The notes below the pieces were generated by a model. That model made no database searches. It was not told where the DNA came from and worked only from the letters and a program-made list of their open reading frames with translations. Positions 1,028-22,386 of a stretch of 22,386 bases of DNA are shown here, piece by piece. The number at the start of each line of letters is the position of its first letter. Position 1 is the first letter of the stretch. A program made the position numbers and the translations under genes. The DNA comes from Bugula neritina (lineage: Eukaryota; Animalia; Bryozoa): contig CAXIUT010000067.1 of assembly GCA_964035545.1 (NCBI GenBank), positions 1 to 22,386 of the forward strand. Direction: 5' to 3'.

Positions 1028-1468
1028 ATGAGTGGAAAATAAAATGAAAACTCCCTATTTCCAGATTTAGATAGTCTTGATTCTATCTATTAATCCGCCC
1101 TGTAATAATCTTTGATTAATGTTAAAAAGTTTGGTAACATTCAACAACCATAACTAAAATAAATAGATCCTCTTGTTATGGTTACGTCTATTTGGAATTT
1201 TAAATTGGCAATTAAGATATCAGAAGATCAAGAATAAAAAGAAAAATTTCAAAAAATAATGGAAATATTAAAAGAAGAAATGGCTATCAAGAAAAATAAT
1301 CCAAAAAAAACTTATATCTAAAAAATGTTTGGTAATTTTTGGAAGACAGTAACTGTGGGTTTTAGTAGTTGTTGGAAAGGATAAAAATAAACTTAATAAC
1401 TTATAAGACTGGAACAAAAGTAAGAAGAGACTCAAATGCTGAGTAGAATTTTTTAAAAAAACCTTTGA
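1028..1468 (+). CDS. Hypothetical protein, 146 aa (TAR=Glu)
   Basis: ATG 1028 to TGA 1466-1468 is open under table 30: MSGKENENSLFPDLDSLDSIYESALEESLINVKKFG...SRIFEKNL*. Composition is protein-like and helical; no family recognised. Confidence 0.55.
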
Positions 1469-1536
1469 AAGAAGAAATGATGAATAAATCAATAAATTTT
1501 TATGAATAATTAATATTGAATATTTATTCATATTCA

Positions 1537-2182
1537 TCATTAATGAGTTTGTTCTCTAAAGTTTGTGTGAGGAGCCACATACTTATATCCATCTCTTGCG
1601 TATTTTGTCTTCTTTTCTTCATCACTAAATGAATTTCTCTTGCTTATGATCTATTCTTCTTTTTGATTCAGTTTTTTAGCCATTTCGTGCATGTAGTAGC
1701 TGTTGATTTCTGTAAAATGAGCAGAGGCTCTGTTTTGAAGTGCATTGATTGGACTGGCATTTAAGCGATCTTTCATATATCTTAAAGTTGTTCCTCTAAA
1801 TAATATGAACTTTACTCTTATGTAAGGAAATCTTCGGGCATTGAGTATACAAAGAGAGTTCCCATGAAAGAAGCCATTCCTAAAAACATGAGGACTCGAT
1901 AGTTTCTGAGTAAAGTATGACCGTTCATGGTAAGACTCCTAAGTGGATAAAATAGTACTTGACCATAGAATATTTATGGAAAAGGAATCCCATGTTCGAG
2001 ACGATGATATGGTTGACATAAGCAATAAGTTTATTAGTTGGATGATATCCGAATTATCTGGGACCAAAGGAGTAGAAGCGTCCAATTCTTCCAAGAAGTC
2101 CGCTTTTCTTGGCTAACTTTTCATTGACAAAGGTGCTTACAGGTTTTAGAGCAACTAGCCAGGCTCTCTGGATGAAATTCAT
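1537..2182 (-). CDS. Mitochondrial ATP synthase subunit i/j (ciliate type), 201 aa; introns 1939-1958 and 1796-1815 (20 nt each)
   Basis: MNFIQRAWLVALKPVSTFVNEKLAKKSGLLGRIGRFYSFGPREFGYHP...NALQNRASAHFTEIN...KKTKYA closely matches my recollection of the Tetrahymena ATP synthase i/j subunit (MNPIQKAWL...GPREYGVHP...RTSAHYIEIN). Two GT-AG introns restore the frame. It ends with TGA TGA. Confidence 0.8.
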
Positions 2183-2222
2183 TTTGTTGGAATAAATATA
2201 TAATCAACTAAATCATTCTTTA

Positions 2223-2629
2223 TCATTCAAAGTAGATTCCAAAGACCATTCCTGTGCAAAATAGGTTTTCATTCGTAAAGGTGCAGGAAGCCCAGTTATC
2301 GAATTTAGGATCCCAGAGAGATTTAGATGCGACTCTTAGACCTTGTCCTTTTAGTTCGCCTAGAATCACTTGCACTCCTAACTTATATCTAGGCATTTTG
2401 AGCTCTTTTCTTAATATAAGAGTACCTTTGATTCTTGATCGAATGATTCTTGAGAGTTACTAAGTTAGTTATGCGCTGGATGCTGCATCATATGTTGCAG
2501 TTTTAAGTTTTTATGCAAAAATACTGTCCATAATGGCTCGCACTTTGCTTGGAAAGAATCTCAATGAATAAGAAACTACATTTAATCTTTTTATGGTTCG
2601 AGTTGATAGGTGTTGCCTGCTTCTGTCAT
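2223..2629 (-). CDS. Tctex-1 family dynein light chain (TCTEX1D/DYNLT2-like), ~121 aa; introns 2560-2579 (20 nt) and 2405-2425 (21 nt)
   Basis: MTEAGNTYQLEP...PRYKLGVQVILGELKGQGLRVASKSLWDPKFDNWASCTFTNENLFCTGMVFGIYFE* carries the typical Tctex-1 motifs (RYK..V...GE..GQG..VASxxLWD...D, FGxYxE). The ORF track misses this gene. Confidence 0.92.
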
Positions 2630-2713
2630 TAAAGTTACACAATTATTTGATTTGAAACAATTTATATCAAATCTAAAAAATATAACTATAATTTGTTAGA
2701 AAAAGTAACACAA

Positions 2714-4248
2714 TCATCTAAGACAAATGCCTTAGCTCTGCAAAAACCCTACGTTCTTGCGAGAGTTTTCTCCTTTATTCGGAAAAAGATTCCAGAATCT
2801 AAGAGTCTAGTCGCCTGCTCCTGTTACTACTGTACTTCCGTCTGCACTCATAGCTAAATAAAGTACTCTACTGGTATGACCTGTTAAAGTAGCTACCTTC
2901 GACATTGAAGGCATTTTCCACAGATTTATCTCATGATTTTGGTATCCATGGGTACTGATTAGTTCCTGAGATACTTTACTGAACATTAAAGAACAAACTT
3001 GAGATCCTGCATCCACTACTTTAGTGGTTGTTCCTGTTAAAGTATTTCTAAATCTGATGGTTCTATCAGCTGTTCCTCCTCCTGAAACAAGAAGTCCATG
3101 TTGATGAGGAGACCAAGCTACAGCTTTGACTGCTGCTTCATGATCATAGAATTTGATAACTGGTTCAGAGGCATGAGGACTCCAAACTAGAAGACGGTTA
3201 TCATTACCTCCAGAGCAGAGTTGTTGTTCATCTGGAGACCATTTTAGTCCACAGACTTCTTGCTTATGTCCTTAAAACCTTGATATAAATTGAGATGAAT
3301 CTCTAAGATCTCTATTTAAAATTGTTTTATCTCTTGATCCTGTGCTCAGAATAGTTGAACTCCAACTAATTGCTCCAACTCGATTAGAATGACCGATTAA
3401 TGATCTTACTTTTTTCATTTTTTGAATGTCCCATACTTGTACTTCACCTGACTCGCTTCCTACTGCTATCATAGGTTATTTTTGTGACCATCCTAATCCT
3501 GTTACAAGGGGATTTCCTAAATCACAAAGTTTTAGAACTTTTGAATTGGCTGCATTCCATAGATAAACGCTTGATGAGAGTCCGACTGAAAGATAGTTTT
3601 GAGGTCCCCAGTCAAGTAAATTAAGATAGTAGTCATCTTGTAGAGAAGGAGCATCAAGTACTTTAATGGGTAGTTTGTTGATTTTTCTTCCTCTAGGAGA
3701 TTACTTCTACATGTTGTCTGTCCATTGGAGTCCTGTTTATTTAAGGGAGAATTGATTTAGTGGAGTATTAGTGGGCTTATTGGCAAACTTGAGGATATTA
3801 TTGTTTTAAAAGCTTTAAATACTTGTTTATTTTCTTTTTCTTGGTGAATCTGTCATGACAACTTTGAGGTAGAGATCACTGACTGACACTCTTTCTTCTT
3901 CTGAAATGAACCCTTTGTTCTATACGTTAGCATCATGTTCTTATTCACTAATCATTGACTCTTTTTTGACGAGTTTTCGCTTGGGAATGTATCTATCTCC
4001 TTCTGGACTTCGATCTATTTCTGGAGATCCTTCTAAGGAATGGTTCTCTACTATTTGTTGAAAGGAATTGACGCATTCTAAATGACAAAAACGATACTGA
4101 TTGGAGATAGCGAAAGGAATGTTGGATTTGATTTATAAGAATTTGAGGTGGATTAGCGTTTTATTGGAGGACTTTCAGGATAGTCGGTCAAAGACTGCTT
4201 ATTGAGGTTAGTTGGAGTTAGTTCAAGTTGAGATGATTCTTGGTCCAT
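2714..4248 (-). CDS. FZR1: APC/C co-activator Fizzy-related/Cdh1 (CDC20 family WD40 protein), ~504 aa; intron 4078-4097 (20 nt)
   Basis: C-box DRYIPKR; KVLDAPSLQDDYYLNLLDW; GHKQEVCGLKWS; GHTSRVLYLAMSADGSTVVTGAGD[TAG=E]TLRFWNLF; C-terminal LR tail (IR-tail equivalent) before TGA. Confidence 0.93.
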
Positions 4249-4430
4249 GGACAGTTTTGCTTATTTAATAAAATTATATAAGAACTCTAATTTATCAAGA
4301 TTTATAATCCATTATTGTTTCTTAACAATAACTGAGTTACTTAGGAAAAGTAGATATAATTCAATGAGATAGTTTTTATGGAGTTAATAAGTGAAGAGTC
4401 AACAAAATTCTGAGGCAATAAAGATGAATA

Positions 4431-6257
4431 TCACTCTTAAGCTCTCGAGGCATAATATAAAACATCTTCGTCTTGTTTTTATTCTTTTACTTTGCTTATA
4501 AACCCTTGGAAATCTTTTCTTGTATTGACTGACAGTTGTCCCTTTATCTGTGCATATGAAATAAACAAACTAACCAGTACATTAGCTATTTTCTCATTCT
4601 ACATTTTTTATACTGAATAAATATATAATTACGAAGAGTAGCGATGATTTTTCCCATTTGAACTTTATCAAATCCTTAAAGCTCTTTTAAGAAGGTACTA
4701 GCTGTCACACGATAGATATAGTTAGCCTATCCTGCTAGTTGACTGATATACTTATGAAGAAGTTCAAAATACTGTTAGTTGTCGAGGAATGATTGACATT
4801 TGACTAAAGACTTAATTGTTTGTTCTCGAACAGCATAGTTATGATCTTTGAGGAAGTTATTAATAATTTTATCCAAAAAATCTTTATGGTTTTAGTAGCT
4901 GAGAGTCTTCATGAAATTAGGTATATTTTATGAGATGGCAAGTTTAAATCTCCATTTTTTATCATTCAAACATCCTTAAATCAAAGGAATCAGATATTTA
5001 ACAGTCCCCTATGCTCCAACTATTTCACTCAATTCCATAACTCTTTGCATGATTCCAATACGCACCACATGACTTTAATCTTTAAGAAGACTAGCTAGAA
5101 TGGGAATTCCAGCATCTGTTACACTATTTTTATCTACAGTTTTAAAATAAGGAATAATAGCTTCAACTAAAGCTAGCTTTACTGTTGGTACTGATTATTT
5201 GTTACCATCTTTACTTGCTTTTTAGATATACTGGAAGAAAATATTCCATGATTGCTGTTGACTAAGTTTCTGAGTTATTTATGATAATTTTATCAAAGAA
5301 ATAGCTCTTACTTATGCCTAAATATCTTTTAGAAGTTCTTAAAAAGTTTATACTACATCTTTTCTTAAAATATCTTTTTAAAGATATGGAGCAATAGAAA
5401 CTAAACACTCAACTAAAGAGTATCTAATTCTCCAACTTTTCTTACCAGAATCAACAAATCTAACTTGCTTGAATATTTTCTATGTGACTTATTATTTCTT
5501 TAATACTCTAGCTATAATAACAGCACACTCTAGTGCTTTTATTTTGATTATATCAAAAGTATCGGATATTAGAGAGTTCCATATCTAATAAAAATCGTTT
5601 CTAATTATTTTCTTTTCTACTACTTTTGAAAAATCTTCTATTGTTTAAGCTACTGCTCTTCTTAGAAGAGGACTTCCTTATTTAAGAGCTAATGATTTAA
5701 AGAGAGTTCTAAGTTATGCTTGTTTATCTTATGTGACATGAGAGTAAGTTGTTGGAATTAAGAAGCAGGCGGCTATTTTAGGAGCATATGCTTTCTCTTT
5801 TTCACATAAAGTGCAAATCAATGGAAAATAATTTTTATCGTAAAAATCTATATTCAAAAAGATGATTACCTTTTTTCTGTCCTTCTGCGAGCTTTTTAAG
5901 ACATTTAACTGCTGTATCTCGAACTGGAGGTTGATCAAGTGAAGCTAATACTCTTAGAGGATAGATAAGAGCAGATAATTATTCTGAATTGCTACAGAAT
6001 TTTTTGAGTTCTAGGATTCCTTAGCAGACTTTGATGAGGAATTAATTTTCATTATCCATTTGTTCAATGATTTAGATGAGGTAGGGGATGAGTTCTTCTT
6101 TGACTCGATTATGTCCTAAATTGATGATGAAGGTACCTAGGACTTAGCCGATGACAGCTATTTTGCTGGCTGCATTTAGTTTTAGAGAGGGATTATCGCT
6201 TTTGAGTTCTTATATGTATACAGTACAATCTTATTCTCCACTATCGTCCACACTCAT
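4431..6257 (-). CDS. PPP2R1A: Protein phosphatase 2A scaffold subunit A (HEAT repeats), ~587 aa; introns 6116-6136, 5848-5869, 4613-4632
   Basis: YIEELKSDNPSLKLNA...LGHNRVKEELIPYL...LASLDQPPVRDTAVKCL...DEDVLYYASRA matches the PP2A-A architecture. Three tiny GT-AG introns give 588 codons, the usual family length. Confidence 0.88.
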
Positions 6258-6412
6258 TTCAAAAGGAAATTCAAATAATCACAAATTTAGATTGTTTATC
6301 TTATTAACAACCAACTTTCAATAAATATTAATATCAACTCTATGTAAGCAAATAAATCAAAAAAGGATGATTTCTTGTTTTTTCTAAGATATTGAAATAA
6401 TATTTAATAACT

Positions 6413-7277
6413 ATGTCAAGACTGTCCAACTTAGCAAAAGTTAGTGTTTATGTCAAATCAGGAAGTTCATCTGTAGCTGGGAAAGTCATTCTTGGAGCAT
6501 CTCTAGTATCGGCTTTTTTTGGAGTTTCTTCCTATATGCAATCTTTTGCTGCCTAAAAAGAATTAGAGTTTCGTAAAAGTCAACTCAAACTACCAGTCTA
6601 TAAACTTTCAGAATAACAAACTGTTAATCCTCCCTGGAATCATGATAATATAGATAGTTGGCTTTATCGCAGAGGTATATCCATCTAACTTAGTTGAAGT
6701 TATTGGTAGACCTATTCATGGAAAAGCTATTAATATCCCTACTAGGATGTTCGAAATACTTGGCGCTGAAGAGGTTGTTCCTCTAGTTACTAGAGAAGAT
6801 AGTAAATATCAGAACCGTCAGGGATTGTTGTTTTCTATGGGATTTGTTCCTGAATTTTTCAAACACCCTACTTGTCGTCCAAGAATCGAGAGAGTTGATA
6901 GACAAAAGTTTATAGGTTTTGTTAGTAAAATGAGTTAACTTCAAAACAAACAATACTTTAATGGAAATGCAACCCAAAAAGGAAGATTGTTCTATAACTG
7001 TGTTGATCTTTAAGATATGGGCAAAAGTTCATAACTTCAAAATAGACAAGAAGCATCAGTAGCTATAATTGAGCGACTGGCTTAAACTGGAGATTTCAAC
7101 TAACGGTCATCTAATCGAAGAGGAGTTGATGCTTCATTTACTGAGCCATATCCTTGGGCTAAGACTGAAGCAGGAGCACTGCAGATGGATAAGATGCCAT
7201 GGGACCACAGAAATGACTCCAAACACTACTTCTGTGCAAGTATTTTTGGATTTTTTGTGGGCGCTTCTGTCTTTTGA
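6413..7277 (+). CDS. SURF1: SURF1-like cytochrome c oxidase assembly protein, 281 aa; intron 6675-6693 (19 nt)
   Basis: N-terminal presequence and hydrophobic segment, then WLYRRVEVIGRPIH, VVPLV, GLLFSMGFVP and a C-terminal H..plus hydrophobic tail. This fits the SURF1 layout (YRxVxxxG, LVNRGWVP-like) but is divergent. Confidence 0.7.
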
Positions 7278-7414
7278 TGAAATAGTAACTAATCATAGTG
7301 ATTGCAATTGTTATGGAATATATTTAAGTTGAAAATTAACTATATATTTTGGGAGCGGTTATAAAAGTTAAATTGATTTGAGAAACACGTAAACAGTTGT
7401 ATATAGATTATAAA

Positions 7415-8892
7415 ATGGTAAAATCGGAAGAAGGAACCAAGCTTTTAAGCATCTTGAAGCCCGCCATAGGACTTATTCCTGAAGTAGAGCACCCCATTGG
7501 AGTCATCTCCTTCTAAACCAAACAAATCTGGACAGGTATCGTTGTACTCGTCTATCTTCTATGTTGTCAGATACCACTTTATGGTATCATAAAGAGTGAA
7601 GAATCTGATCCTTTTTATTGGATGCGTGCTATCTTGGCATCAAACAGAGGTACTCTTATGGAGCTCGGTATTTCTCCAATTGTGACTGCTTCTATGATTA
7701 TGCAGCTTTTGAGTGGAGCTAAACTGATCAAGGTTGATCAGAACAATAAAGAGTAGAAATCTCTTTATGAGGGAGCTCAGAAGTTGGCTGGTATTGTAAT
7801 AGCTTTTGGACAATCATTTGCCTACGTATGGTCTGGAATGTATGGAGATATTTCAGAAGTTGGAGCAGGAAACGCTATCTTGATCGTTGTTCAATTGACT
7901 CTTGCTTCTTTGATTACAATTCTTCTTGATGACATGTTAGGCAAAGGATATGGAATTGGTAGTTCAGCTACAAGTATCTTTATTGCTATCAATATGGCTG
8001 AAACAATCGTATGGAATTGTTTTTCACCTTTATCGTTTAAAAACAAAACTGGAGATACTGATGTTGAAGAATATGAAGGAGCATTTGTCGAACTATTCTA
8101 TGGTATATTCTTCAAGTCAAATAAACTTGGATCTTTGAATGATGCCTTATTTAGAGAAAGTTTACCTAATTTGAGCAATATTTTAGGTACAGTATTTGTT
8201 TTTTTGGTAGTCATTTACTTCCAAGGATTCAAAATAACTCTTAAATTGGCTAATAACAAAGCTACATCTGATTCGTCTTATCCAATCAGATTATTCTATA
8301 CGTCAAATATGCCTATCATTTTGATGAGTGCATTGATATCAAATGTATATTTCTTTTCTCAAATGCTTTACAGAAACTTTAGAGGGTCTTTCATCACTTC
8401 TATTTTTGGTAAATGGCAAGAAGCTGGATATCAAGGTCAAATTGTACCAGTTGGAGGCCTTATTTACTACATTACTTCACCTAAAACGTTTTTAGATGCC
8501 CTTACTGATCCCATCCATACTATCATCTATGTTGGCTTTGTTGTTGGAAGTATCTCTCTTGTTATTTAGGTTGTGCTCTTTTCAGTAAAACTTGGATTAG
8601 CGTCTCAGGACAGGGACCTAGATAAGTTTGTGATAACTTGAAAGAACAAGGAATGACCATGAAAGGATTTACTGATAGAGGAACATATTAAAAAATTAAA
8701 GGAATTATCGAAACAGCTGCTTTGTTGGGAGGTATTTGCACTGGTCTTTTGACCATTTTTGCTGACTTTTTAGGCGCTATTGGTTCTGGAACAGGAATTC
8801 TTCTTTCAGTAACAATTATCTATGGTCTTTACGAGGATATAATGAAGGAGAAGGCTACTGGAAAGCAGAAAGGAGGAAAGCAAGGAAACTGA
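7415..8892 (+). CDS. SEC61A: Sec61 translocon alpha subunit, 485 aa; intron 8550-8569 (20 nt)
   Basis: [79 protein letters not shown]. Confidence 0.98.
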
Positions 8893-8980
8893 TTATAATC
8901 TGACATATCATTTTAACATATGATTGATAGGATAGTCCGTCTTCTTTTGTTGAGGAGAAAGTTATACAAATAAAATTATT

Positions 8981-9696
8981 ATGTCAAACAAACACTAGTA
9001 GGGCTATATGCCATGGGATAGATCTGGAAACAGGTTGTTGGTGAAGTCTTAGTTAGCTAAAAATAGACCAACAAACTACGAAATTCCTGACTCGAACTTT
9101 GTTTATGGCAAAATAACTGCTGATGACCCATAGCATGCTAATGAGGTGATGTATAAGTGGAAAAATCATTAAAAAACTAATAATCAAAACCATTTGAAGC
9201 AGAAAGACTTTATTTAAACGAACAAACAGTGTCTCCATAGCTTACTACATACTTCATCACAATTTTCAGGACATCGAAAAGATAAGACTCAGTATAAAGG
9301 AGTCAGATAAGGCACTAATGTTATACCTATAAAACTTCCAGAAGCAAACCATTTCTATGGAAAACCTCTTGAGTAAAATATGATTTTATTTAGTCTATAA
9401 GACCCAGTTAGACTTGTGGTTGCTAATAGTTATGGGTAGGATGATAAAGATCTTAGGCATACTTTCTATGCCAATCAGAGCCAGGTCAGTTCAGCTCCTC
9501 ATAGAAGATTAAGTTGCCATATTGTAGATATTATTTTAAATAGACAAAGAATCATAATTTAGTGAAGGGAGCTACTGCTAAGAGGTTGGCTAAGTTTGAT
9601 TGGGAGAAGCAGGATGCTCTTTGGAAGTTGTCTAAGTTCAAAGGAGTTAATTATAAGGTTGAGACAAGGAGACCTCGAGTTGAATCAACTAAATGA
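8981..9696 (+). CDS. CFAP77: CFAP77-like ciliary microtubule inner protein, ~224 aa; introns 9373-9393 (21 nt) and 9524-9543 (20 nt)
   Basis: NRLLVKSELAKNRPTNYEIPDSNFVYGK...KDFIETNK...LPEANHFYGKP...LWKLSKFKGV follows the motif order I recall for CFAP77 (NPLL.K..LG, P...F.YG, DF...NK, LWKxxKF). Confidence 0.75.
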
Positions 9697-9754
9697 TTAA
9701 TAAGGCCTATACTCATCTATATTATCGTAATATTTAAATTTAGAGGAGCACAAA

Positions 9755-11560
9755 ATGTATGCCAAATTTAAAAACTTTTTTGCTAAACAAAACACCACTT
9801 CAACTCCATCTCTTTCCTAGGAATTTGACCACTCGAAGGTGATGCCAGGAGATGCATCTCAGTGTCCTTTTATGTCAAAGCAATCTAGAAAGGAGGGAGA
9901 TGAAAAGAAGTGTCCAGTGACGGGTAAGGGAGTAGCTAAGGCAACAGAGGATTCTGATTCATAGGATTAGAAGCCAAAGGGAGGATGTCCTTTTATGAGT
10001 GGTACATCAGATAAAAAGAAGAATCCTAATTTAGGTTTAAATGAATGTGGATTTGATGAGCCTTTTATTTCTAAGTTCAAATTTTATCTATCGGCTTCTA
10101 AAATAGACTTCAGTTCAATGAAAAATGGATAGTTTCCTGTAATAAATCGATAGTTATTCAATTCTTATCCTATTTATCTAAAGCACACCCTGTTTTATAA
10201 TGGATAGGATTATAAGAAGGTAAGAAATTTATAATGTTGTTCAAGGTTTATGGCATATTAGCAACTTAGAGAGAAAGGAAATAAAAAATACAATAAAAAA
10301 TTATATTATTAAGCTTTGGATTATTACTAGAGAGCACTATCACTCTTTAGATGGCTTTAATACCACTAGCCTTTGAATTAAAGTACTTTGTCTTCAAATA
10401 AAATATTAACTGAACAAAGTTTAGATTAGATGTCTGAAAGTGGATCAAAAATGAATATTAACGTATAAGATTAAAAAAATTAAGATCCATCTGCTTTTTT
10501 TGACTAGTTGAAAACTAAATATAAATAATTTTTTACGACTTATAGTGATGACAATACTAAATATTATGATGGAGAGGAATTAAATTAAACTGCTGATATT
10601 GAGATGAGAAAATCTTTGCTTATACAAATCTATCTCAATATGTCTGCAGCTTATATCAATACTCATCACTACTCTTTGGCTGAACTAATTTGTAATGATG
10701 GTTTAGAACTTTCTGATAAAGTTTCACAGCTGTATTTCAGAAAAGCTCAAGCTCTATCGATGAGAAATGATTGTACTCTTTAACAGCTATAATTGGCTAA
10801 AGAGTGTATTGGAGTGGCTATTGAAAGGAGAGCAGGATAAAAAATATTTTCAACTGCTAATAACAATATCCTTAAAATGTTGAATCTTCATGATTCGGAG
10901 GAGGCCTATGAGGAATGTAGGAAACATGTTGAAGATTGCATTTAAAAAGTAAAGGCTAAAAACTAAAAGAACTATCAAAGGATATACAATCGTACTAAAG
11001 AGATAAATGAAGTCTAGAAAAAGATAATAGCTGAAGGCAAGGTTCCTAAATAAGGTCGATCATAAAAGGTTCTTTACAATACTACTTAAATGAAAATAAT
11101 ATAAAAAATGATATTAAAGTATACCAAAGTTATTGAATTTTATACTGAATCTAAAAATGCAGAACAAGTTATGTTAGCTAAAAAAGAACTTCAATAAGTA
11201 TTAAGGATAAAAAGTGAAGTTAAAGATTATTTTGATGTTCAACTTCAAGAAATCGATGACTAGTTAGGAGGGTTAGATTCTTAGAAAATAAGAGGTCGAG
11301 TGGCATATGTTAAGACAGACTATGCAGAAGCAATCTACAATGCAGGTAAATTTAATTTTACTATGCTTGAGTGGGTGATCAAGGAGATAGTGAAGGAAGA
11401 ATCATAAGAAAAGAAGAAATAATAAGAAAAGTAGAAATAAAAGGTGGAAAAGGTGCCTAATAGTGGGATATTGTAGTTGAAGAAGGGTAACTATAAGTTG
11501 TTGTACTTTTTGGTGGTGATTCCATTGATTGTGATGGGAGTGAACGTGTTTATTCTTTGA
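9755..11560 (+). CDS. TPR-containing, tail-anchored membrane protein with N-terminal Cys-Pro motifs, 601 aa
   Basis: Uninterrupted ORF under table 30. TPR-like segments are LREKGNKKYNKKLYYEALDYYERAL, IYLNMSAAYINTHHYSLAELICNDGL and LYFRKAQAL. The C-terminus is hydrophobic (LLYFLVVIPLIVMGVNVFIL*). The N-terminus carries CPFM, CPVT and CPFM. Confidence 0.85.
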
Positions 11561-11587
11561 AGTGATGGTTCATAGTTGATAATTAAA

Positions 11588-12070
11588 TCATTTTGGTATG
11601 AGTTTTCCTTATTTGACCATATTGGGCACTTCTGCTGCTAGCCATGGTCCAAGAGCCATGGCAAGTGCATGAGCAATACCTAACTTGGGCGTATGTTTGG
11701 CCCATAGAGGTGCAAAGTGTATATCTTGGCATATTTTACCTCCTCTATACATCTTAATAGTTTTTCCTTATAGTTCTGGTAGTTATAGTTCAATGGGAGA
11801 GCTGGGATAGGTGGCAGGTATTTAAAATTGTAATTTGAATTCATATCTAACTAAATTGTAAGTATATGAACATATTCCTTGCCATTTTACTCCATCTTTT
11901 GATGGTTCAACTTTAAACCAATCGTTATCTTGTTGCTTATTTGATTTTACATAAAATATGATTGCTCTTAGCTCCTATTTGAGTCTATCTATCCATTTTT
12001 AATCTTTAGGACCAGCGTGGAGAGTTAATAATGGTATTTTAGAAGCTGCTTCTTCGATAGAGCTCATCAT
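11588..12070 (-). CDS. UFC1: UFM1-conjugating enzyme 1, 160 aa
   Basis: [18 protein letters not shown][TAG=E]EL...NKQQDNDWF...IPATYP...[44 protein letters not shown]. Confidence 0.96.
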
Positions 12071-12199
12071 GTTGAATTAGTATAAAGATATAAAAATAAT
12101 AAGAAGAAATAAAAGGGCAGATGATGAGAGAGGTGTTTTTATTTCTAGTTAAGTGATTTTTTGAACAGATATCAATTAATAAATAATTTATCAACACAA

Positions 12200-13840
12200 A
12201 TGAGAGGAATGATGCGTATCGTCCAGGGCTTCTCCAAGAAGCTCAGCATTGCAGATACTGCCAAAGTTATCCAAGATAAGATCATGAACATCTCGCAAGT
12301 GGTACTTCTATGTTTAGTTAGAACGACGTTAAAGAGTTCGGAACTGTCATAAGCATTGGAGACGGTATTGCCAGAGTGGTTGGACTCAATAAAGTTCAAG
12401 CTGGAGAAATGGTGGAATTCCGCTCAGGCATCAGAGGTATGGCTCTCAACCTTTAAACTGATAATGTTGGTGTTGTCATCTTCGGAAACGATAGGTTCTT
12501 CAATCTTTATTCAGATAAATTCAAGAAGGAGACACTGTTACTAGAACTGGAGCTATTGTGGATGTCCCCATTGGAGAGGAAATGTTGGGTCGAGTATTCG
12601 ATGCCCTAGGTAATCCTATTGATGGACTTGGTCCAGTCAAAACTACTCAAAGAAAAAGAGTTGAAATCAAAGCCCCTGGTATTATTCCAAGAAAATCTGT
12701 CAACGAGCCTATGCAAACAGGACTAAAGGCTGTAGATGGATTAGTGCCTATCGGAAGAGGACAGCGAGAATTGATTATTGGTGATAGACAAACGGGAAAG
12801 ACAGCTATTGCTATTGATACTATTATTAACCAAAAGGCTAACTTTATTTCTGGAGATCTTAAGAAACAACTTTACTGTGTGTATGTCGCTATTGGACAGA
12901 AGAGATCAACTGTTGCCAACATTTGTTTGACTTTGAAACTTCATGATGCTCTTAAATATACTATTGTTGTTGCTGCTACTGCTTCTGAAGCTGCTCCTCT
13001 TCAATTTTTGGCTCCCTATTCAGGATGTGCTATTGCTGAGTTCTTCAGAGATAATGGAAAACATGCTCTCATCATCTACGATGATTTGTCTAAACAAGCT
13101 GTTGCCTACAGACAAATGTCTTTGCTGCTAAGAAGACCTCCAGGAAGAGAAGCCTACCCTGGAGATGTGTTTTACTTGCATTCTCGATTGCTTGAAAGAG
13201 CTGCTAAGATGAATAATGATTTCGGAGGAGGCTCTATGACTGCATTGCCTGTCATTGAAACTCAGGCTGGTGATGTCTCAGCATATATTCCAACTAACGT
13301 TATTTCTATTACTGATGGACAAATCTTTTTGGAAACTGAGTTGTTTTACAAGGGTATTAGACCTGCTATCAACGTGGGTCTATCTGTGAGTCGAGTGGGA
13401 TCAGCTGCTCAGATTAAAGCTATGAAGCAGGTGGCTGGTAAATTAAAATTGGAGCTTGCCCAGTATAGAGAAGTGGCTGCTTTTGCCCAATTCGGATCTG
13501 ATCTCGATGCTGCAACCCAACAACTATTGAACAGAGGTGCACAGTTGACTGAGTTGTTGAAGCAGAAGCAATTCGTAATATTATATTAACAAAGGTACCA
13601 ATGGTTGCTGAGGAGCAGGTGTGTGTGATATTTGCTGGTGTGAGAGGTTTTCTCGATAAAATGATGACTTCTTAGATATCTAAATTTGAGTCTAAATTTG
13701 TGGCTCATCTTCGTGCAACTCATATGAGTTTACTTTAAAAGATTAGAAAGGAAGGGCAACTTGATCCATCTGATTAACAAAATTTGAATTCTATCCTTGA
13801 AGCCTTCATTCCTGATTCTGGATGTGCCATGAAACAATGA
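12200..13840 (+). CDS. ATP1: Mitochondrial ATP synthase F1 alpha subunit (nuclear-encoded), 526 aa; introns 12302-12321, 12495-12514, 13575-13594 (all 20 nt)
   Basis: GDGIARV, GMALNL[TAA=E]TDNVG, Walker [52 protein letters not shown]; short basic N-terminal presequence. Confidence 0.99.
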
Positions 13841-13928
13841 TAAATAAACAAATTGAATTTATTACTATTTAAATCAACGACCATCCTTACTATCATCATC
13901 CTTATTATCAACTATCATCACCTTTCAA

Positions 13929-14014
13929 TCACCCTTATCATCTATAATATCATCCTTACCATCTATAATATCATCCTTATCATCTATAATATCATCCTTA
14001 TCATCTTTATAATC
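13929..14014. repeat. 21-bp degenerate tandem repeat (TCATCCTTATCATCTATAATA, ~4 copies) next to the internal telomere tract
   Basis: Directly visible; related low-complexity TCA/TCC-rich sequence extends back to ~13880. Confidence 0.85.
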
Positions 14015-14031
14015 TTTTTTATAAAACCATA

Positions 14032-14106
14032 GGGGTTGGGGTTGGGGTTGGGGTTGGGGTTGGGGTTGGGGTTGGGGTTGGGGTTGGGGTTGGGGTTGGG
14101 GTTGGG
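14032..14106 (+). repeat. Internal telomeric tract (GGGGTT)12GGG, oriented as a right chromosome end
   Basis: 75 nt of perfect G4T2 repeats, followed directly by unique sequence with no inverted C4A2 tract. Confidence 0.98.
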
Positions 14107-14154
14107 CATAACCAAAGATGTCGTTAGTATTACTATAGTAATAATATTTAATTT

Positions 14155-14921
14155 TCACTATGATTATAATGAATCATATGTAATAAGCAAAGCTTATTCC
14201 TTTACTTCTTTCACGCCTACTTCTTTCTTCTTCTCGTTCAATCGAAACAACCTACCGTAAAATCGATTCTTTATCTGATTTCTACTTCGGTGGCTCATTG
14301 TCTTTTGAATAAGTTGCCAATTTTTACCATGTTGGTTGTATAAATCAATCAACTCTAAGTCTTCCTTGACTGTCCATTCATTTTTATTAAGATCCGGACG
14401 GAGATAGTTTTAGTAATGATCTTTTAGTTGTTTATAATTTCTTTCTATATTGCTATTCAAGTACTTGGAAAACTTTGAGCTATAACTTGCCAGTTATTCA
14501 AACCGTACTCTTCTACTCTCTCGAGAAGCATTTTGTCTTCTTTCTTGCTCCAGCAATCCTTCGACTGGTTCTCCAGTCTGCGAAAGCGACTATAGCACAT
14601 TTTAGAGTTTCTTCCAGGTATATGAGAAGCCACTTCTTCGAACCGAATATTCTAGTTTTTGCAAAGACGGAGGAGAAGGGAATCCTCTTCTTCAGTCCAG
14701 GCTTTTTTGGATTGTGAGTATCCTTCTTTGAGGAGGTCTTCTTGAGTCAAGTTTAGGTTTTCTGAGCTATTTATTGTTTTGAAATTATTTTCAGCGTTCT
14801 AAGAGGTAGGATTCTAGGTGGGTAGACTATCAGTGAGGTGATGTTGGATGGAGAGAACAGGGCAGGGAACGAGTAGGTAGTAGAGAGGAGGAGAGTAATT
14901 GTTGAATAGGTAGTTCAGCAT
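14155..14921 (-). CDS. Myb transcription factor with three Myb/SANT repeats, ~248 aa; intron 14445-14464 (20 nt)
   Basis: Repeats read WTEEEDSLLLRL...EVASHIPGRNSKMCYSRF, WSKKEDKMLLERVEEYGLNNWQVIAQSFPKRNYKQLKDHY and WTVKEDLELIDLYNQHGKNWQLIQKTMSHRSRNQIKNRFY. The start codon is less certain. Confidence 0.92.
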
Positions 14922-15482
14922 ATCACTAATAGTGATTTATTTATATTCAATACCATTGATTTACTAAGATAAATATTTACTGATCCATCAAAAATAATGA
15001 TTTAAATCACTTAAAATCTTCTATCTTCCTAACCTACCTCTTCTGATGGTTTTCCTGGGTGATAAGCAGCAGAATAGACTTTGTTTTTAGTCTTTATTTT
15101 TAAACTCAATTTGAATTAAAAATAGATTTTTAGTTCATTAAAAGCCAATCAAAATAGGATAAAGCATGATTGAAGAACCACTTGGGTTTATTTTATGGAT
15201 AAAACTTGAAATAATATTTATTTTTAGAGTAATAATTTCAATTGTAATAACAATCCTCAAAAAAGTGTATCGGATGACTGTTATCATGATTCTATTTAAA
15301 AAAAAAAGACATAAAGGACAATGAGTTGTTATATATAATGACAATATTCAGGTTGGAAAGCAAAATGATTATTTGAACAATATATATTGGTAATATATTT
15401 GTGTTTTATCTTATAATATAGTCATGATTATAAAACTATTCTGAATATTAAATCTAATATAACATATTCTTGATACTTATAA

Positions 15483-18429
15483 ATGACTAGCATCAATGTT
15501 CAAAGTATCTGGATACTTAGTGCTCTTGATAAATTGATTTCTTAGAATAAACCAATCCTGCTCTTGTTATCTAGCTCTTCGAAAAAAAATAAGTCATTTT
15601 GCAAGCACTTCAGAACAATAAAATAGATCCACAAAAATATAAAACTATTGTTGCCAAAGGAAATAAAGATTAAAATTAAATTGTTAAGGCTTGTGCTCAA
15701 TAAGATATCATTAAACTATCTAATCCCAAAGATTAAAATTCTGTTAATACCTGGTTTAAAATGATTATCTAAAATACAGGAGTTCCTTATTAAAAACAAA
15801 AACAACTCTATCACTATTATAAAAATCAAACTAGTCCTCAAAAACCCTCAACTCAACCTGCCCAATCAGTCCAACCAGTACAACCTATTAAACCAGTACA
15901 ACCAGTCCAACCTATTAAACCAGTACAACCGATTCAGCCGATGCCTAAAAAATAAGAGCAAAAAAAGGTCTAGCCACCAAAGGTAGTACCTCAAGTAGCA
16001 CCTCAAAAAGTGGAGAATGGTCCTAATGTTGACTAGATCGTAAGTTTTAAAACTCTTGACACAATGCTTGAAGATTATTCTGGTCCAGTTTCCCGATATG
16101 AAAGGTTGTTATAAAGAAAGATCAAATTATTAGACTTAGTTAAGCGTAAGTAAATGACTGCAGATAAATACAGAGCAACACTTGAGTTATTTAAGAAGCG
16201 TCTTCATGGGTAAATATCAAGATATTAAGGACAGATTTGGCTGATGATTATAAATTTTAGCTTTAATCGATCAATGACTTCCATGATGGCAATGTAGGCG
16301 CATGGTTTTCTGAAGTGATAGATGAGACTAAATTTAATCAGTAGATGCAGATGGATAAATTGACATCACTGAAGAAAGGACCTTCTAAAGTATAAAGCAA
16401 CAAGAAACCTATGAGATAGTCTGTTTCTATAAAACCAAGAGGTGGATACGATATTGGTCAGATTAATAGCTTTAGAGTATTTGATGATCAGCTAGAATAA
16501 CAAGTATAAAACAAGAATAATTACAAATAGGTGTTATAGAAGAAAAAGAAATTTTTATAATTAGCTAAAAGAGGGGAGTTGAATGGCTAAAAATATCGAG
16601 GATTGTTGATGAAGTGCATTTCTTCAGCTAAGAAGTAAATTTAATAGTTATTCAGCTAACAAATCAAATAGACAATGGAATTTTAGTTATCATAATTGGC
16701 TTAATTTCATGATAACAAAATATCTTCGTGGTGGGATGATGTTCTATCGAATGCTGAGTTGATGTTATAGGATCCAGGAAACAGTTATGAAGGACTTGAA
16801 TCAAGGGAAGAAGATAAAAGCTAAAAATAAAGATGATGATGACATTGATATGAAGTTTCTTAATGGATTAGATGACGATGATTAAGATATCAATTTCGAT
16901 TAAGATCTTAATGTTATAGCCAGACCTGCACGAAAACCTAAAAAACCAGCAGTTTAGCCTAAAAAATAAGAACCAAAAAGATAGTAAGATAAGAAATAGG
17001 GATCATCTCCTGGTGGTAGGTCAAGTGAAGGTTCAGATATTTATAGTTTGAAGGTTTTGATGAGTTATTGACTGAAAACCAGAAGAATCCATCTAGATTT
17101 ATGGTATACTACTAGAGGAAGCAGGCTATATTTGGAATGATGCAGAAAGGATAGATAGATGCCAATAAATATAAAATCCTCCAATAAAAAGGTTTATCTT
17201 CTGCTTCAAAGTACAATAGTAGACATATAGTTAAAAGATAAAGGACATAATAGAGATGGACTTGATGGATTTGAATGATATGAATGCATGGAAATGTAGC
17301 TGAATGGTTTTAGAGTTTGATCTAAGATGCTGGATTCAACTTTTAGGAACAAACTTAGATGTATCAGAAGTATAAAGGAAGGGATCTTCTGCTGGCATTT
17401 AAAAGAATAAGGAATAAACATAAGGATCAAATGCTATCAAATAAAATCCTCCAATAGCTGAAGTTATATGCTTTACAGTTATTTCTAAACTATTCGCTCA
17501 TTGCTAGGCTACATAGGATATCCTTTATTACCAATAGTTATTGTAGAAAAGATAGAAGTTGATAGGTTTGGTGACTGAAAATAGATTAATAGCAGGTAAA
17601 TACAAAGATATCAACAAAGCAGCAGCCTCTAAAACATAAAAGTATTCATACTATTAGTATAGTTCTTTTCTTAAAGGCTGTATTCTTGATGAAATTCACT
17701 TACTAGAATAAAAGTATAAAGACAATGAAGAAGAATGGTTTCAACATCTTAAAAAATATTTATTACAATCCCCCTCCTTAATTGAAGTTGCCTGTACGTA
17801 TCATAATAACATAGTAAAATCCTGAGATGAAGCGAGTGAATACTTTATCATCAGCATAGAAGGCAAAATACTTGGCCAAGAAGATGTCAGCTTATGAAAG
17901 TTTGATAGCATATAATAAAGCAAACAATATAACTGAGCAAAATTCTCTTTTATCTGTTTTTTAGAAATCAAAGAAGGAGGTTTTTAAAGCAATTTAGCTC
18001 TTGTCTAAAGATAAAGAGATGGATATATACAATTTATCATAGAAATTGTTTCCTCCAATAACTGTATAGATATTTTATAATGGTAAATATGCTGTTTTGA
18101 AGAAAAGTAATTACTATTGATATATATAGAGGCAGAAACAAGTGTTGGGATATTTTGTTCAAGAAGCAGCAGCTTTGAAGCAATATGGCAATAATATTAA
18201 GAAATCAACTAATGTACAGAATCATCAGGATGTGAAGTAGTAGTTGATAAAATGTGAGTAGAATATTGGGGTGTTGAAGAATTGGCCGGGGAAGGAGTTG
18301 GTTGCCTTTCCTTTGATTAGCCAGTAGAAGGTAGAGAAGTATAATTTGGATTTGAATAAGCATTTGGATAAAAATGAGGTAGAGTTGATTGTTCAGAATA
18401 TGATGGGTTGCATGGCTAGAGTTATTTGA
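15483..18429 (+). CDS. Large uncharacterised protein with four ~100-aa helical repeats, a QP-rich linker and an acidic linker; several tiny introns and at least four single-base frameshifts
   Basis: Repeat cores: LSALDKLISEN..KKEVILQALQNNKIDPQKYK; SFKTLDTMLED..RKIKLLDLVKRKEMTADKYR; SFRVFDDQLEE..KKKFLELAKRGELNGEKYR; SLKV(F)DELLTEN..RKQAIFGMMQKGEIDANKYK. Introns at 16210-16229, 16635-16655 and 17211-17230, with more downstream. Final TGA at 18427-18429. The gene model is approximate. Confidence 0.65.
15864..15947 (+). repeat. Coding 9-bp tandem repeat encoding (Q/K)P(V/I) triplets
   Basis: Translates as QSVQPVQPIKPVQPVQPIKPVQPIQPMP in the gene's frame. Confidence 0.8.
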
Positions 18430-18453
18430 AGTTGTATGTTGGAAAGTAGTAAA

Positions 18454-18909
18454 ATGAAAGGTTTTGGGTTAAAATTCATCCAGGAGTACAAAAGAAGCTA
18501 AAACTATAATTAAATTGCCTGCTAAAGAGATGATGGATGTGATCAAAGGCAATCCAGTTTTAACTGTTCGTTTGTTCTAAAAAAACTTTTGGGGGACTAT
18601 GAAGTTATTCGCTTAGTTTGTTTTAACAGGCTGTTTTATTAGAAACAACATAGTATAGTAGAAAATAACATCTGGTTCTCATGTTCTCCACTACTAGCTA
18701 AAGGTATACAAGCCATCTAAACCACTGATAACTGAAATAACCCATACGACTATGAAGATGCCTGTTCCTTTTAGACCAGATCCTAACTTGTAAAAAGAGC
18801 TATCAAAAGAGTGTCTATCTTATTTGAAGAAGTGATTATCAATATGATGGTTATTAAATATTTGAATGAATAAAAAAGTGATGATCAATATGGTCGTTAT
18901 TATATTTGA
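18454..18909 (+). CDS. Possible hypothetical protein with an in-frame TGA at 18733-18735
   Basis: MKGFGLKFIQEYKRS...IWFSCSPLLAKG..TTDN*NNPYDYEDACSFETRSELVKRAIKRVSILFEEV...; the same frame looks coding on both sides of the TGA. No family recognised. Confidence 0.35.
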
Positions 18910-19535
18910 ATGAATAAAATATGCAAGCAGTGTGATAAAATAGCACTAACTCGATGCATTAAGGGGTATTTGTGTGGGGGATGTGGCAAGCGATGTCATA
19001 ATCGATATTACATCCTGTGGAATTTATTGGTTGCGGATTGGAGAGAAATAAAGTAGTTAAAAGCATGGGAATGCTTAGTTATAAGAATATGGGAGAGAGG
19101 CCTTTGAGAAAAAGTAAAGTTTAAAGTCAACTAAGAGCGAGTAGAAGTTTAAAAGAAGGTCAAATTCATCACAAAGGATCATACAACAGTCACAGTAATA
19201 AAGAATAAAAGGTGCTTTATAGAAAGAGCAGAGATCTTTCTATGTCTAATAAAGAATAAAAGGTGCTTTATAGGTCCAAATATGTATAAAACAAGAAGAG
19301 TATAGGAGTGATGGTGGACTTGAAATAGGATAATAGTATTTAAGAAGATAGATAGAGGTAGTTGTTGTGTCTTCGGATAAGGTATCATAGCAGTAGAGGT
19401 TGTTGAAGTTGATGAAGAGCAAGTTGTAATCTGAAACGTCGCAAAAGCAAGAAGATGGCTATGGAATATGAGTAGAAGTTAAAATGATCCGCAAGATGAA
19501 AAGTTGAATTTTGATAAGTATATGATATATCTGAT
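18910..19535 (+). CDS. Putative protein with an N-terminal B-box-like zinc finger; 3' part probably frameshifted, end approximate
   Basis: MNKICKQCDKIALTRCIKGYLCGGCGKRCHNRYLH has CxxC-x7-C-x5-CxxC-x4-H-x4-H spacing. A 26-bp direct repeat lies at 19197-19222 and 19248-19273. Confidence 0.45.
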
Positions 19536-19645
19536 TAATAAGGTCAAATTTAATTATTTACATGAAACAATATTGATAAATGGTATAATAATAATCATCA
19601 ATGATATAATATAGTATAGTATATTAGCAATATTCAATAGCAAGA

Positions 19646-21235
19646 TCATACTGCATAATTTTTTGATATACTGCAGAAGGGAGAGATGTTTTTTTGTTAG
19701 ATTTCTAATTCTATGGTACTAATCTAGTATGCCTATTATATCTAAACAGCAAAGTCCTTGTAAATTTTTAATCATCAACTGGTATTATCTCACCTTAGAC
19801 TACTAGTCTGTTATATAGATCAGTTATCTATTAGCCTATGAAGCTGCTACCCATTGTATCAGTAGCTTCAATTATTAATCACCACCGAAGGCACCACATC
19901 CCCATCGTCCGCTCACTACTGGCATAAATTAGTCTGCACCCATTTCTGCTCCATTGAAACCAGTCACAGCCTTATTGATCTATCTTCTCACACCCTTCTT
20001 GCTATATTGCTGATTGGCATTCATCACTCGACTAAAATCTGTCGCATCGATTGCCACTATAATCGAGTTGGATACCTGATGATCAGAGCTAACATGTTTG
20101 AGTTATTTATACTAAAAGCTGTCACTGTATCCTTAGTAGTTGCTAAAACGACGAGCTCCGTATATAATAATGGACCTCGTCATCGTCCAGTTACTCGCAA
20201 ATGATCTTGGATATTAGAGTTTATGGAAATATTGAGAATAATACTTACTACTGTACGCAACCGTTTCTTAGAATACCTCCTCCTAGTCGCTTATTGGCAA
20301 AGTCAATCATAATTCCTTTTCCACAGTAATCTTAAATAGATTTTTTTTGTATAGAAAAGATCTACACTGACCTCAGAGGGACTTATCTATCCATTTTCCA
20401 TCACATCCATAAAATCTGTATTACTGTTTCTAGTTCTTTGCAATTTGATAACTCCTTTCAGTAGTGATCGTTTCTAACTACATGTTTAAAATAGGCAATA
20501 AAACATCTTAACTTCTCTCTTCTTACTCTTTGCTTCGAAGGATATAACTAGTTGTATCTTTGAGTCATCAGCTCACCGAAAATGGACATCAGATTATCTC
20601 ATTTGGCGAGGCAGTATACCTAAAAAACATACAAACCAATATTATAAATACTTGTCTCCTTTCTAGTGCTACCAACTCCTGATATCCTGAAACCAACAAT
20701 CTCACGTTATTCTCTATTAGTTTTATATCTTTAGTCAGCATCTCTATTACTACTGGCAGCTATACTCCCCAAAAATCTTAGTCCTTTATGCTTAGAGTTT
20801 TTTAAGTTCTCTATCTTGTGGTATTTCAAATTGGAAAGAATGAACTCCAAGACCTTTTGTTTTGCTGTAGCGATCGTTTAGTTCTTTTAAAGACCTCTAG
20901 ATGTTCTTATAGTAGGTCATAATAGTTGGAGTTAATAAAATGAAGGAAGGTCCCACCATCTTTCTTGCCTCCAATATTTATATCACTGATTACTACTACT
21001 CTATTTGAATAGTATCGCTTCCCTACCTGGAAGATTAGTGGTGCTATCTTGAATCGTTGTTCTTTGATCTTGAGTCATTTTGAGATCTTGGGGACCTTTT
21101 TGGTTATCTTCTGGGAGATTTTCTTGGTTGTCGAGACTATTCTTTTTTATTGGGATTATGTTTATAGGCAAATTTATCTAGAAAGTTGTCCGTTAATTTT
21201 GATTGAGATTTATCTTATTTTTTCATTTTTTTCAT
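19646..21235 (-). CDS. PARG: Poly(ADP-ribose) glycohydrolase; contains frameshift(s), 3' end approximate
   Basis: [29 protein letters not shown] (GGG-x6-QEE signature), [60 protein letters not shown]. The N-terminus is low-complexity and basic. Absent from the ORF track. Confidence 0.93.
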
Positions 21236-21328: not shown

Positions 21329-22244
21329 AATCCACAACTCCTATCAAATAAACAAATAATAAGTCACATCCCTTGTGCCATAATGAAATCCACAACTGCT
21401 ATCAAATAAACAAATAATAAGTCACATCCCTTGTGCCATAATGAAATCCACAACTGCTATCAAATAAACAAATAATAAGTCACATCCCTTGTGCCATAAT
21501 GAAATCCACAACTGCTATCAAATAAACAAATAATAAGTCACATCCCTTGTGCCATAATGAAATCCACAACTGCTATCAAATAAACAAATAATAAGTCACA
21601 TCCCTTGTGCCATAATGAAATCCACAACTGCTATCAAATAAACAAATAATAAGTCACATCCCTTGTGCCATAATGAAATCCACAACTGCTATCAAATAAA
21701 CAAATAATAAGTCACATCCCTTGTGCCATAATGAAATCCACAACTGCTATCAAATAAACAAATAATAAGTCACATCCCTTGTGCCATAATGAAATCCACA
21801 ACTGCTATCAAATAAACAAATAATAAGTCACATCCCTTGTGCCATAATGAAATCCACAACTGCTATCAAATAAACAAATAATAAGTCACATCCCTTGTGC
21901 CATAATGAAATCCACAACTGCTATCAAATAAACAAATAATAAGTCACATCCCTTGTGCCATAATGAAATCCACAACTGCTATCAAATAAACAAATAATAA
22001 GTCACATCCCTTGTGCCATAATGAAATCCACAACTGCTATCAAATAAACAAATAATAAGTCACATCCCTTGTGCCATAATGAAATCCACAACTGCTATCA
22101 AATAAACAAATAATAAGTCACATCCCTTGTGCCATAATGAAATCCACAACTGCTATCAAATAAACAAATAATAAGTCACATCCCTTGTGCCATAATGAAA
22201 TCCACAACTCCTATTAAATAAACAAATAATAAGTCACATCCTTT
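21329..22244. repeat. Subtelomeric 58-bp satellite, ~15.8 copies
   Basis: Unit AATCCACAACTGCTATCAAATAAACAAATAATAAGTCACATCCCTTGTGCCATAATGA, head to tail with no spacers. The first and last copies carry a CTCCTAT variant. Confidence 0.97.
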
Positions 22245-22310: not shown

Positions 22311-22386
22311 GGGGTGGGGTTGGGGTTGGGGTTGGGGTTGGGGTTGGGGTTGGGGTTGGGGTTGGGGTTGGGGTTGGGGTTGGGGG
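22311..22386 (+). repeat. Right telomere, (GGGGTT)n
   Basis: G4T2 array at the window end; the first unit is the variant GGGGT. Confidence 0.97.

Follow-up and report, generated by a model that had tools for sequence, protein, structure and literature searches.

Evidence that a ciliate chromosome in a Bugula neritina assembly is read with UAA and UAG as Glu codons and with termination at UGA alone

Introduction

The DNA considered here is contig CAXIUT010000067.1 of the Bugula neritina assembly GCA_964035545.1. It was analyzed over its full length, positions 1-22,386 of the forward strand, hereafter called the window. Telomere repeats cap both ends, (CCCCAA)n at 1-93 and (GGGGTT)n at approximately 22311-22386. 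Both arrays are of the Tetrahymena type, and this 22.4-kb stretch (33% GC) is therefore an entire macronuclear chromosome of a ciliate. An initial annotation, made from the sequence alone, had proposed that TAA and TAG both encode glutamate in its genes and that TGA is the only stop codon. This proposal is upheld by three lines of evidence, namely the columns of homologous proteins, a codon comparison with a syntenic relative and a set of spliced, transcript-like contigs. The organism thus very probably reads UAA and UAG (collectively UAR) as Glu and terminates translation only at UGA, which is NCBI genetic code table 30, the peritrich nuclear code.

Genes of the window

The six reading frames were split at every stop codon and the stop-free pieces were scanned against Pfam. 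With TGA taken as the sole stop, the Pfam-matched pieces fuse into long frames rich in TAA and TAG. Short GT..AG introns of 19-25 nucleotides (nt) account for all frame changes. The spliceosomal introns located below have lengths of 19-22 nt, in most cases exactly 20. The genes and their main features are as follows.

1537..2185, minus strand, unnamed gene containing GPR[TAA]FG, with the end ...QTH-TAA-TGA-TGA
2223..2639, minus strand, Tctex-type dynein light chain (Pfam Tctex-1), stop TGA at 2225-2223 after ...GIYFE
2714..4150, minus strand, FZR1/Cdh1 WD40 protein (Pfam PF24807 at 6e-67), 13 in-frame UAR codons (10 TAA, 3 TAG), stop TGA at 2716-2714 after ...ICLR
4431..6137, minus strand, HEAT-repeat, PP2A-A-like gene (weak Pfam HEAT match), about 30 in-frame TAA/TAG, introns at 4613-4632 and 5848-5869, stop TGA at 4433-4431
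6401..7277, plus strand, unnamed conserved gene with an ortholog in the syntenic relative described below, intron at 6675-6693 (19 nt), with the end ...GASVF-TGA-TGA
7415..8892, plus strand, Sec61 alpha (Pfam SecY), TAA at 7514, 8623 and 8689, TAG at 7754, intron at 8550-8569 (20 nt, containing a TAG at 8567), stop TGA at 8890-8892
9578..11560, plus strand, unnamed gene of 660 codons with a hydrophobic C-terminal tail, 26 TAA and 16 TAG, stop TGA at 11558-11560
11588..12076, minus strand, UFC1 (Pfam UFC1 at 3e-26), six in-frame UAR codons (5 TAA, 1 TAG), stop TGA at 11590-11588
12128..13840, plus strand, ATP synthase alpha (ATP1; Pfam PF00006/PF00306), TAA at 12454, 12516, 13736 and 13775, TAG at 13673, introns at 12302-12321, 12495-12514 and 13575-13594 (20 nt each), stop TGA at 13838-13840
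14155..14930, minus strand, Myb-domain gene (Pfam Myb) with an ortholog in the syntenic relative, in-frame TAA and TAG, intron at 14445-14464 (20 nt), with the end ...TAG-TGA
approximately 20000-20330, minus strand, PARG catalytic domain (Pfam PARG_cat_C at E 4e-4)
20245..20331, minus strand, PARG signature stretch, ending with a TAG-TAA pair

The Pfam scan of the genes at 1537-2185, 6401 and 9578 returned no family, and the label "ATP synthase i/j" that the initial annotation had given to the first of these is without Pfam support. The in-frame codons cited in that annotation were all recovered: GMALNL[TAA]TDN of ATP1 at 12454-12456 (plus strand) and, on the minus strand, GAGD[TAG]TLRFW of FZR1 at 2809-2807, RLK[TAG]E of UFC1 at 11977-11975, GPR[TAA]FG at 2056-2054 and Q[TAG][TAA] of PARG, where CAG TAG TAA is in frame at 20253-20245.

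In-frame UAR codons and the columns of distant homologs

Homologs were fetched with the stop-free pieces and aligned by script to the window frames, with X placed at each TAA or TAG. The ATP1 and Sec61 sets comprised 120 matches each. For FZR1, most of the 150 representative matches are giant multi-WD40 proteins, and the set used consists of the 52 representatives with a length of 370-900 residues, a filter meant for Cdh1/Cdc20-type proteins. The residues found in the columns that face UAR codons (one-letter code) are listed below.

ATP1, TAA at 12454: E 62/62
ATP1, TAA at 12516: E 48/62, D 9, Q 4
ATP1, TAG at 13673: E 59/62
ATP1, TAA at 13736: E 31/62, D 16
ATP1, TAA at 13775: D 51/62, E 11
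Sec61, TAA at 7514: R 36, K 20
Sec61, TAG at 7754: D 58, E 4
Sec61, TAA at 8623: D 62/62
Sec61, TAA at 8689: variable
FZR1, TAG at 2809: E 47/50
FZR1, TAA at 3274: variable
FZR1, TAA at 3478: G 45/54

Glu is near-invariant at four of these columns (12454, 13673, 12516 and 2809). The statement of the initial annotation that UAR codons fall on invariant Glu positions does not hold for every codon, as Asp is faced in several cases, Gly in one and Arg/Lys in one. The Sec61 codons at 7514, 7754 and 8623 correspond to E in closer relatives. When mean BLOSUM62 scores are summed over the 12 informative columns of ATP1, Sec61 and FZR1, E ranks first for TAA (E 15.3, D 13.4, Q 4.9, K 3.0) as well as for TAG (E 11.9, D 9.7, Q 4.2). 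The distant homologs thus show that the residue is acidic and exclude Gln, Lys and Tyr.

These columns bear on two other codes. In the ciliate code of table 6, used by Tetrahymena and Paramecium, TAA and TAG are Gln. Table 6 is the commonest code in Oligohymenophorea (PMC10553269), the class that is indicated here by the G4T2 telomeres and by the nearest named Sec61 protein, from Ichthyophthirius (54%). Nevertheless, the Q scores fall far below the E scores for both codons. The other code is the split one of the uncultured Oligohymenophorea sp. PL0344, where UAA is Lys and UAG is Glu (PMC10553269). This is a published variant from the same class, and two Sec61 TAA codons, at 7514 and at 8689 (listed above as variable), do lie on K/R columns; against it, the TAA at 12454 occupies a column where Glu is invariant.

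Two further genes were compared with solved structures. In UFC1, two stop-free pieces that align to the UFC1 structure in PDB flank an ungapped interval of 19 residues containing three UAR codons. In PARG, the stretch before CAG TAG TAA aligns to VDFANKYLGGGVLGHGCV of a solved PARG (PDB 8adj). For both proteins the alignments end one residue short of the UAR positions. The PARG family continues with Q-E-E, and the TAG-TAA pair after Q would stand at this Glu-Glu pair.

Codon comparison with a syntenic relative

Searches with Sec61 and ATP1 led to an 18,375-nt metagenome contig from ENA (L003) that is collinear with positions 1673-14708 of the window, at a nucleotide identity of 70-80%. The genes of the two contigs share 53-93% amino-acid identity, and alignment of the supported frames at the protein level gave 3,492 aligned codon pairs. 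The gene at 9578 aligns in a single unbroken block of 669 columns.

In L003, the partners of window TAA codons are GAA (23), TAA (16), GAT (8), GAG (6), TAG (6), TTA (4), CAA (3) and AAA (2), and those of window TAG codons are GAG (8), TAA (7), TAG (6), GAA (5) and GAT (3). The pattern is similar in the reverse direction, from L003 TAA and TAG to the codons of the window. When both directions are pooled, the sense partners of TAA (n=101) are mainly E (53), followed by D (10), L (9), Q (6), N (5) and K (4), and those of TAG (n=48) are E (23), D (8), Q (4) and K (4). Tyr occurs once for each codon. With Glu codons at 5% of the background, Glu partners are enriched for both codons (TAA, p = 6e-23; TAG, p = 8e-12). 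Moreover, GAA outnumbers CAA about eightfold as a partner of TAA, whereas a pattern driven by mutation alone should make CAA, reached from TAA by a transition, at least equally frequent. A log-likelihood was calculated for each amino acid from the empirical substitution table of the same alignment. Glu leads the next-best residue, Asp, by 120 units for TAA and by 39 units for TAG, and leads Gln by 133 and 56 units, respectively.

At individual sites, L003 has GAG opposite the codons at 2056 and 2809, GAA opposite 7514 and GAT opposite 3478. In the PP2A-A-like gene, the partners of the UAR codons are mostly GAA, GAG, TAA or TAG.

This comparison reduces the two codes considered above to negligible probabilities. 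A few L003 partner codons are indeed CAA or CAG, as table 6 would have it, but Gln accounts for only 6 of the 101 TAA partners and 4 of the 48 TAG partners, with the log-likelihood deficits relative to Glu already given. For the PL0344-type code, Lys makes up 4 of the 101 TAA partners versus 53 for Glu, and the K/R column at 7514 is itself matched by GAA in L003. Table 6, the PL0344 code and the Tyr code of Mesodinium are thus excluded.

The same alignment argues against the view that the in-frame stops are never translated and reflect pseudogenes, assembly errors, splicing or RNA editing. An apparent frame break of 1 nt in PARG, near 20185, does indicate that the assembly or the gene is imperfect in places. 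However, the 116 UAR codons lie in genes whose frames are otherwise conserved with the relative over the range of identities given above.

Other relatives carry TAA and TAG codons of their own. In L003 and in L002, an ENA contig that has only ATP1 in common with the window and no synteny, such codons of ATP1 and Sec61 fall on columns of invariant E (61/61, 61/62, 58/62 and 54/56). Three more distant Sec61 relatives provide one informative codon each: in L013 it is a TAA on a D 62/62 column, and in L012 and L014 a TAG on a variable column. With the relatives' own TAA and TAG on invariant E/D columns, the UAR=Glu code is thus common to a clade and extends beyond this contig.

Introns and transcript-like contigs

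Four public runs, belonging to three studies, provided contigs for comparison with positions 4301-10300 of the window. Runs X1 and X3 each yielded one long contig that retains the introns and is DNA-like. In contrast, run X4 yielded short contigs limited to gene bodies (4472-5338, 6408-7298 and 7412-8905). These contigs are identical to the DNA except for three gaps, at 4613 (20 nt), 6673 (19 nt) and 8550 (20 nt). The gaps at 6673 and 8550 are GT..AG introns that had already been predicted from frame changes, whereas the gap at 4613 was first seen in the X4 contig and then found to be a GT..AG intron. Run X4 is called transcript-like on the sole ground that introns are missing from its contigs, and it behaves as complementary DNA (cDNA).

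The Sec61 codons at 7514, 7754, 8623 and 8689 are all retained in the X4 contig, as are more than 12 in-frame TAA/TAG codons of the PP2A-A-like gene. The sole TAG removed is that at 8567, within the Sec61 intron. As the intron-less contigs keep the in-frame codons unaltered, these codons are neither spliced out nor edited. The same DNA is found, moreover, in the contigs of all four runs. Taken with the frame conservation described above, these observations leave next to no probability that the in-frame stops are untranslated.

The X4 contigs end approximately 13-21 nt from stop codons, and the untranslated regions (UTRs) seem to be extremely short.

Codon use and termination

The ortholog-supported frames of the window contain 79 TAA and 37 TAG in 3,497 codons, that is, 3.3% UAR. 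About 41% of the Glu positions in the supported coding sequence of the window are written TAA or TAG (116, versus 166 GAA/GAG). The same frames contain 38 TGG and no TGA, a zero that arises partly by construction, the frames having been split at TGA. When these stretches are read in the other two frames, TGA makes up 2.9% of triplets, which corresponds to about 101 expected in frame. The uninterrupted frames span 371-669 codons; their length, the short introns at every frame change and the gene ends described next are the actual evidence on termination.

In agreement with the initial annotation, all 11 gene ends resolved in the window are TGA. In four genes (Tctex, FZR1 and those at 6401 and 9578), this TGA is aligned with a TGA of L003 and the C-termini are conserved. 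The ends of ATP1 and Sec61 coincide with those of their homologs. Two genes end in tandem TGA TGA, that at 1537 (1537-1542) and that at 6401 (7275-7280). In UFC1, a TAA stands 7 codons before TGA and is followed by a short coding stretch, GKLIPK. Within the supported frames of this window, no frame junction needs read-through of TGA.

These data can be set against a context-dependent code, in which UAR would be Glu within genes but would terminate near transcript ends, or in which TGA would also be read as Trp. Such a code is favored by the genes at 1537 and of Myb, which have TAA or TAG just before TGA, by a third apparent UAR-TGA case at 9563, which may be intronic, and by the positions of the contig ends, which suggest short 3' UTRs as in ciliates with ambiguous codes. 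On the other hand, coding resumes after the TAA near the end of UFC1, and four gene ends are TGA in both species. As for Trp, the absence of in-frame TGA alongside 38 TGG and the lack of any junction requiring read-through speak against it; there is no sign of TGA as Trp in this window, which is the scope of the statement. A context-dependent code is therefore very unlikely, and UAR as Glu with UGA as the sole terminator is preferred.

As a separate observation, UAR directly before TGA is above expectation at 3.3% UAR, in a tiny sample of two genes.

Weight of the evidence and proposed decoding

Several points weigh against the assignment of UAR to Glu and of termination to UGA alone. In the distant homologs taken alone, the scores of Asp are near those of Glu, and the distinction hangs mainly on one relative, L003. 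Some UAR codons lie on non-acidic columns (G at 3478, R/K at 7514). Run X4 is without a record as RNA. Genes for tRNAs, for the release factor eRF1 and for rRNAs are all absent from the window and the fetched loci; for tRNAs, the ARAGORN scan gave none in the window nor in seven related loci. Finally, TAA or TAG directly 5' of TGA in two genes, that at 1537 and Myb (14155-14160), leaves room for residual UAR stop activity near gene ends.

By analogy with other reassigned ciliate codes, it can be proposed that UAR codons would be decoded by tRNAs derived from tRNA-Glu and carrying UUA and CUA anticodons. The eRF1 of the organism would have lost recognition of UAR and kept that of UGA.

Other features of the chromosome

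An internal (GGGGTT)12 tract is located at 14034-14106, between ATP1 and the Myb gene. In L003, Myb likewise comes after ATP1, with a spacing of about 1.7 kb. From run X1, a 12.6-kb contig aligns to approximately 1334-13931 of the window, as would be expected from a 14-kb version of the chromosome or from an assembly that broke off at the internal repeat. Just inside the right telomere, at approximately 22000-22240, there is a tandem array with a unit of about 61 nt (aataagtcacatcccttgtgccataatgaaatccacaactgctatcaaataaacaaat).

The gene at 9578-11560 (plus strand) and UFC1 (minus strand) are convergent, with stop codons 27 nt apart (11558-11590). UFC1 is apparently missing from L003, where positions 13560-13964, corresponding to 11436-12174 of the window, give a gap of about 400 nt.

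In PARG, the frame apparently shifts by 1 nt near 20180-20195 (minus strand), after ...LDDDE (gacgag g tcc), and no GT..AG intron of fitting length is present at approximately 20180-20195. An indel in the assembly, a pseudogene or programmed frameshifting may account for this break. In the title of a 2020 paper cited by PMC12411067, programmed frameshifting is claimed to be frequent among peritrichs.

In a seahorse assembly (Hippocampus zosterae, GCA_025434085.3), the 22-kb contig JANTIC010000432.1 (L001) carries an ATP1 that is annotated as a fish gene and whose product shares 94% identity with the window protein. This contig has 57% GC and no synteny with the window, ATP1 being all that the two have in common, and its ATP1 is without in-frame stops. 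It may represent protist contamination of the seahorse assembly.

Source lineage and significance

The host looks like an oligohymenophorean ciliate, as indicated by its G4T2 telomeres and by the Ichthyophthirius protein as its nearest named Sec61. For ATP1, the cluster name is Climacostomum; for Sec61, a protein atlas returned generic eukaryote clusters only, and no named peritrich protein was found among the ATP1 and Sec61 matches and cluster names. UAR=Glu is the published code of peritrichs (PMC11687900; PMC10553269), as the initial annotation had stated, and is reported to have arisen once, in Peritrichia, from UAR=Gln in the ancestor of Oligohymenophorea (PMC10553269). Because the literature has this single origin, a peritrich source would be the default. 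It is unlikely that a separate oligohymenophorean lineage, perhaps marine or epibiotic, reassigned UAA and UAG to Glu independently; if true, a non-peritrich source would represent a second origin of table 30. The choice put forward by the initial annotation, between a peritrich and an independent lineage, is sound. The code itself is already known, and the reading is correct rather than new. The window adds one more well-supported peritrich-code genome, and a new question arises only if the organism is no peritrich.

The practical weight of the finding lies in annotation. This genome and its metagenomic relatives need translation with table 30. The standard or bacterial code breaks the genes of this genome into fragments, and its relatives appear in public protein sets in just this way, as pieces of 240-384 residues for Sec61 and of 353-470 residues for ATP1. 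Translation with table 6 would wrongly turn every UAR position into Gln; catalytic glutamates, such as the pair in PARG, would be misread in this way.

Comparison with known codes

Table 6 (Tetrahymena, Paramecium, Oxytricha) reassigns the same two codons and keeps UGA as the sole stop, but these codons are Gln there and Glu in the window; the telomere repeat of Tetrahymena is of the same type. The PL0344 code has UAG as Glu, UGA as stop and the class in common with the window, whereas UAA is Lys there and Glu here. In table 29, of Mesodinium, UAR is sense as in the window, but it is read as Tyr, a residue found here as a single partner for each codon. In tables 27 and 28, of Condylostoma and karyorelicts, UAR is Gln and UGA is also Trp, whereas the window is without in-frame TGA. 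Table 30 has been published since 2003 and was described from Vorticella, Opisthonecta, Campanella and Carchesium. The peritrich code of table 30 is the same as that of the window in having UAA and UAG as Glu and UGA as the sole terminator, without any code difference. In addition, three peritrich genomes have narrow intron-length distributions (PMC13685798), which fits the tightly sized introns of the window.

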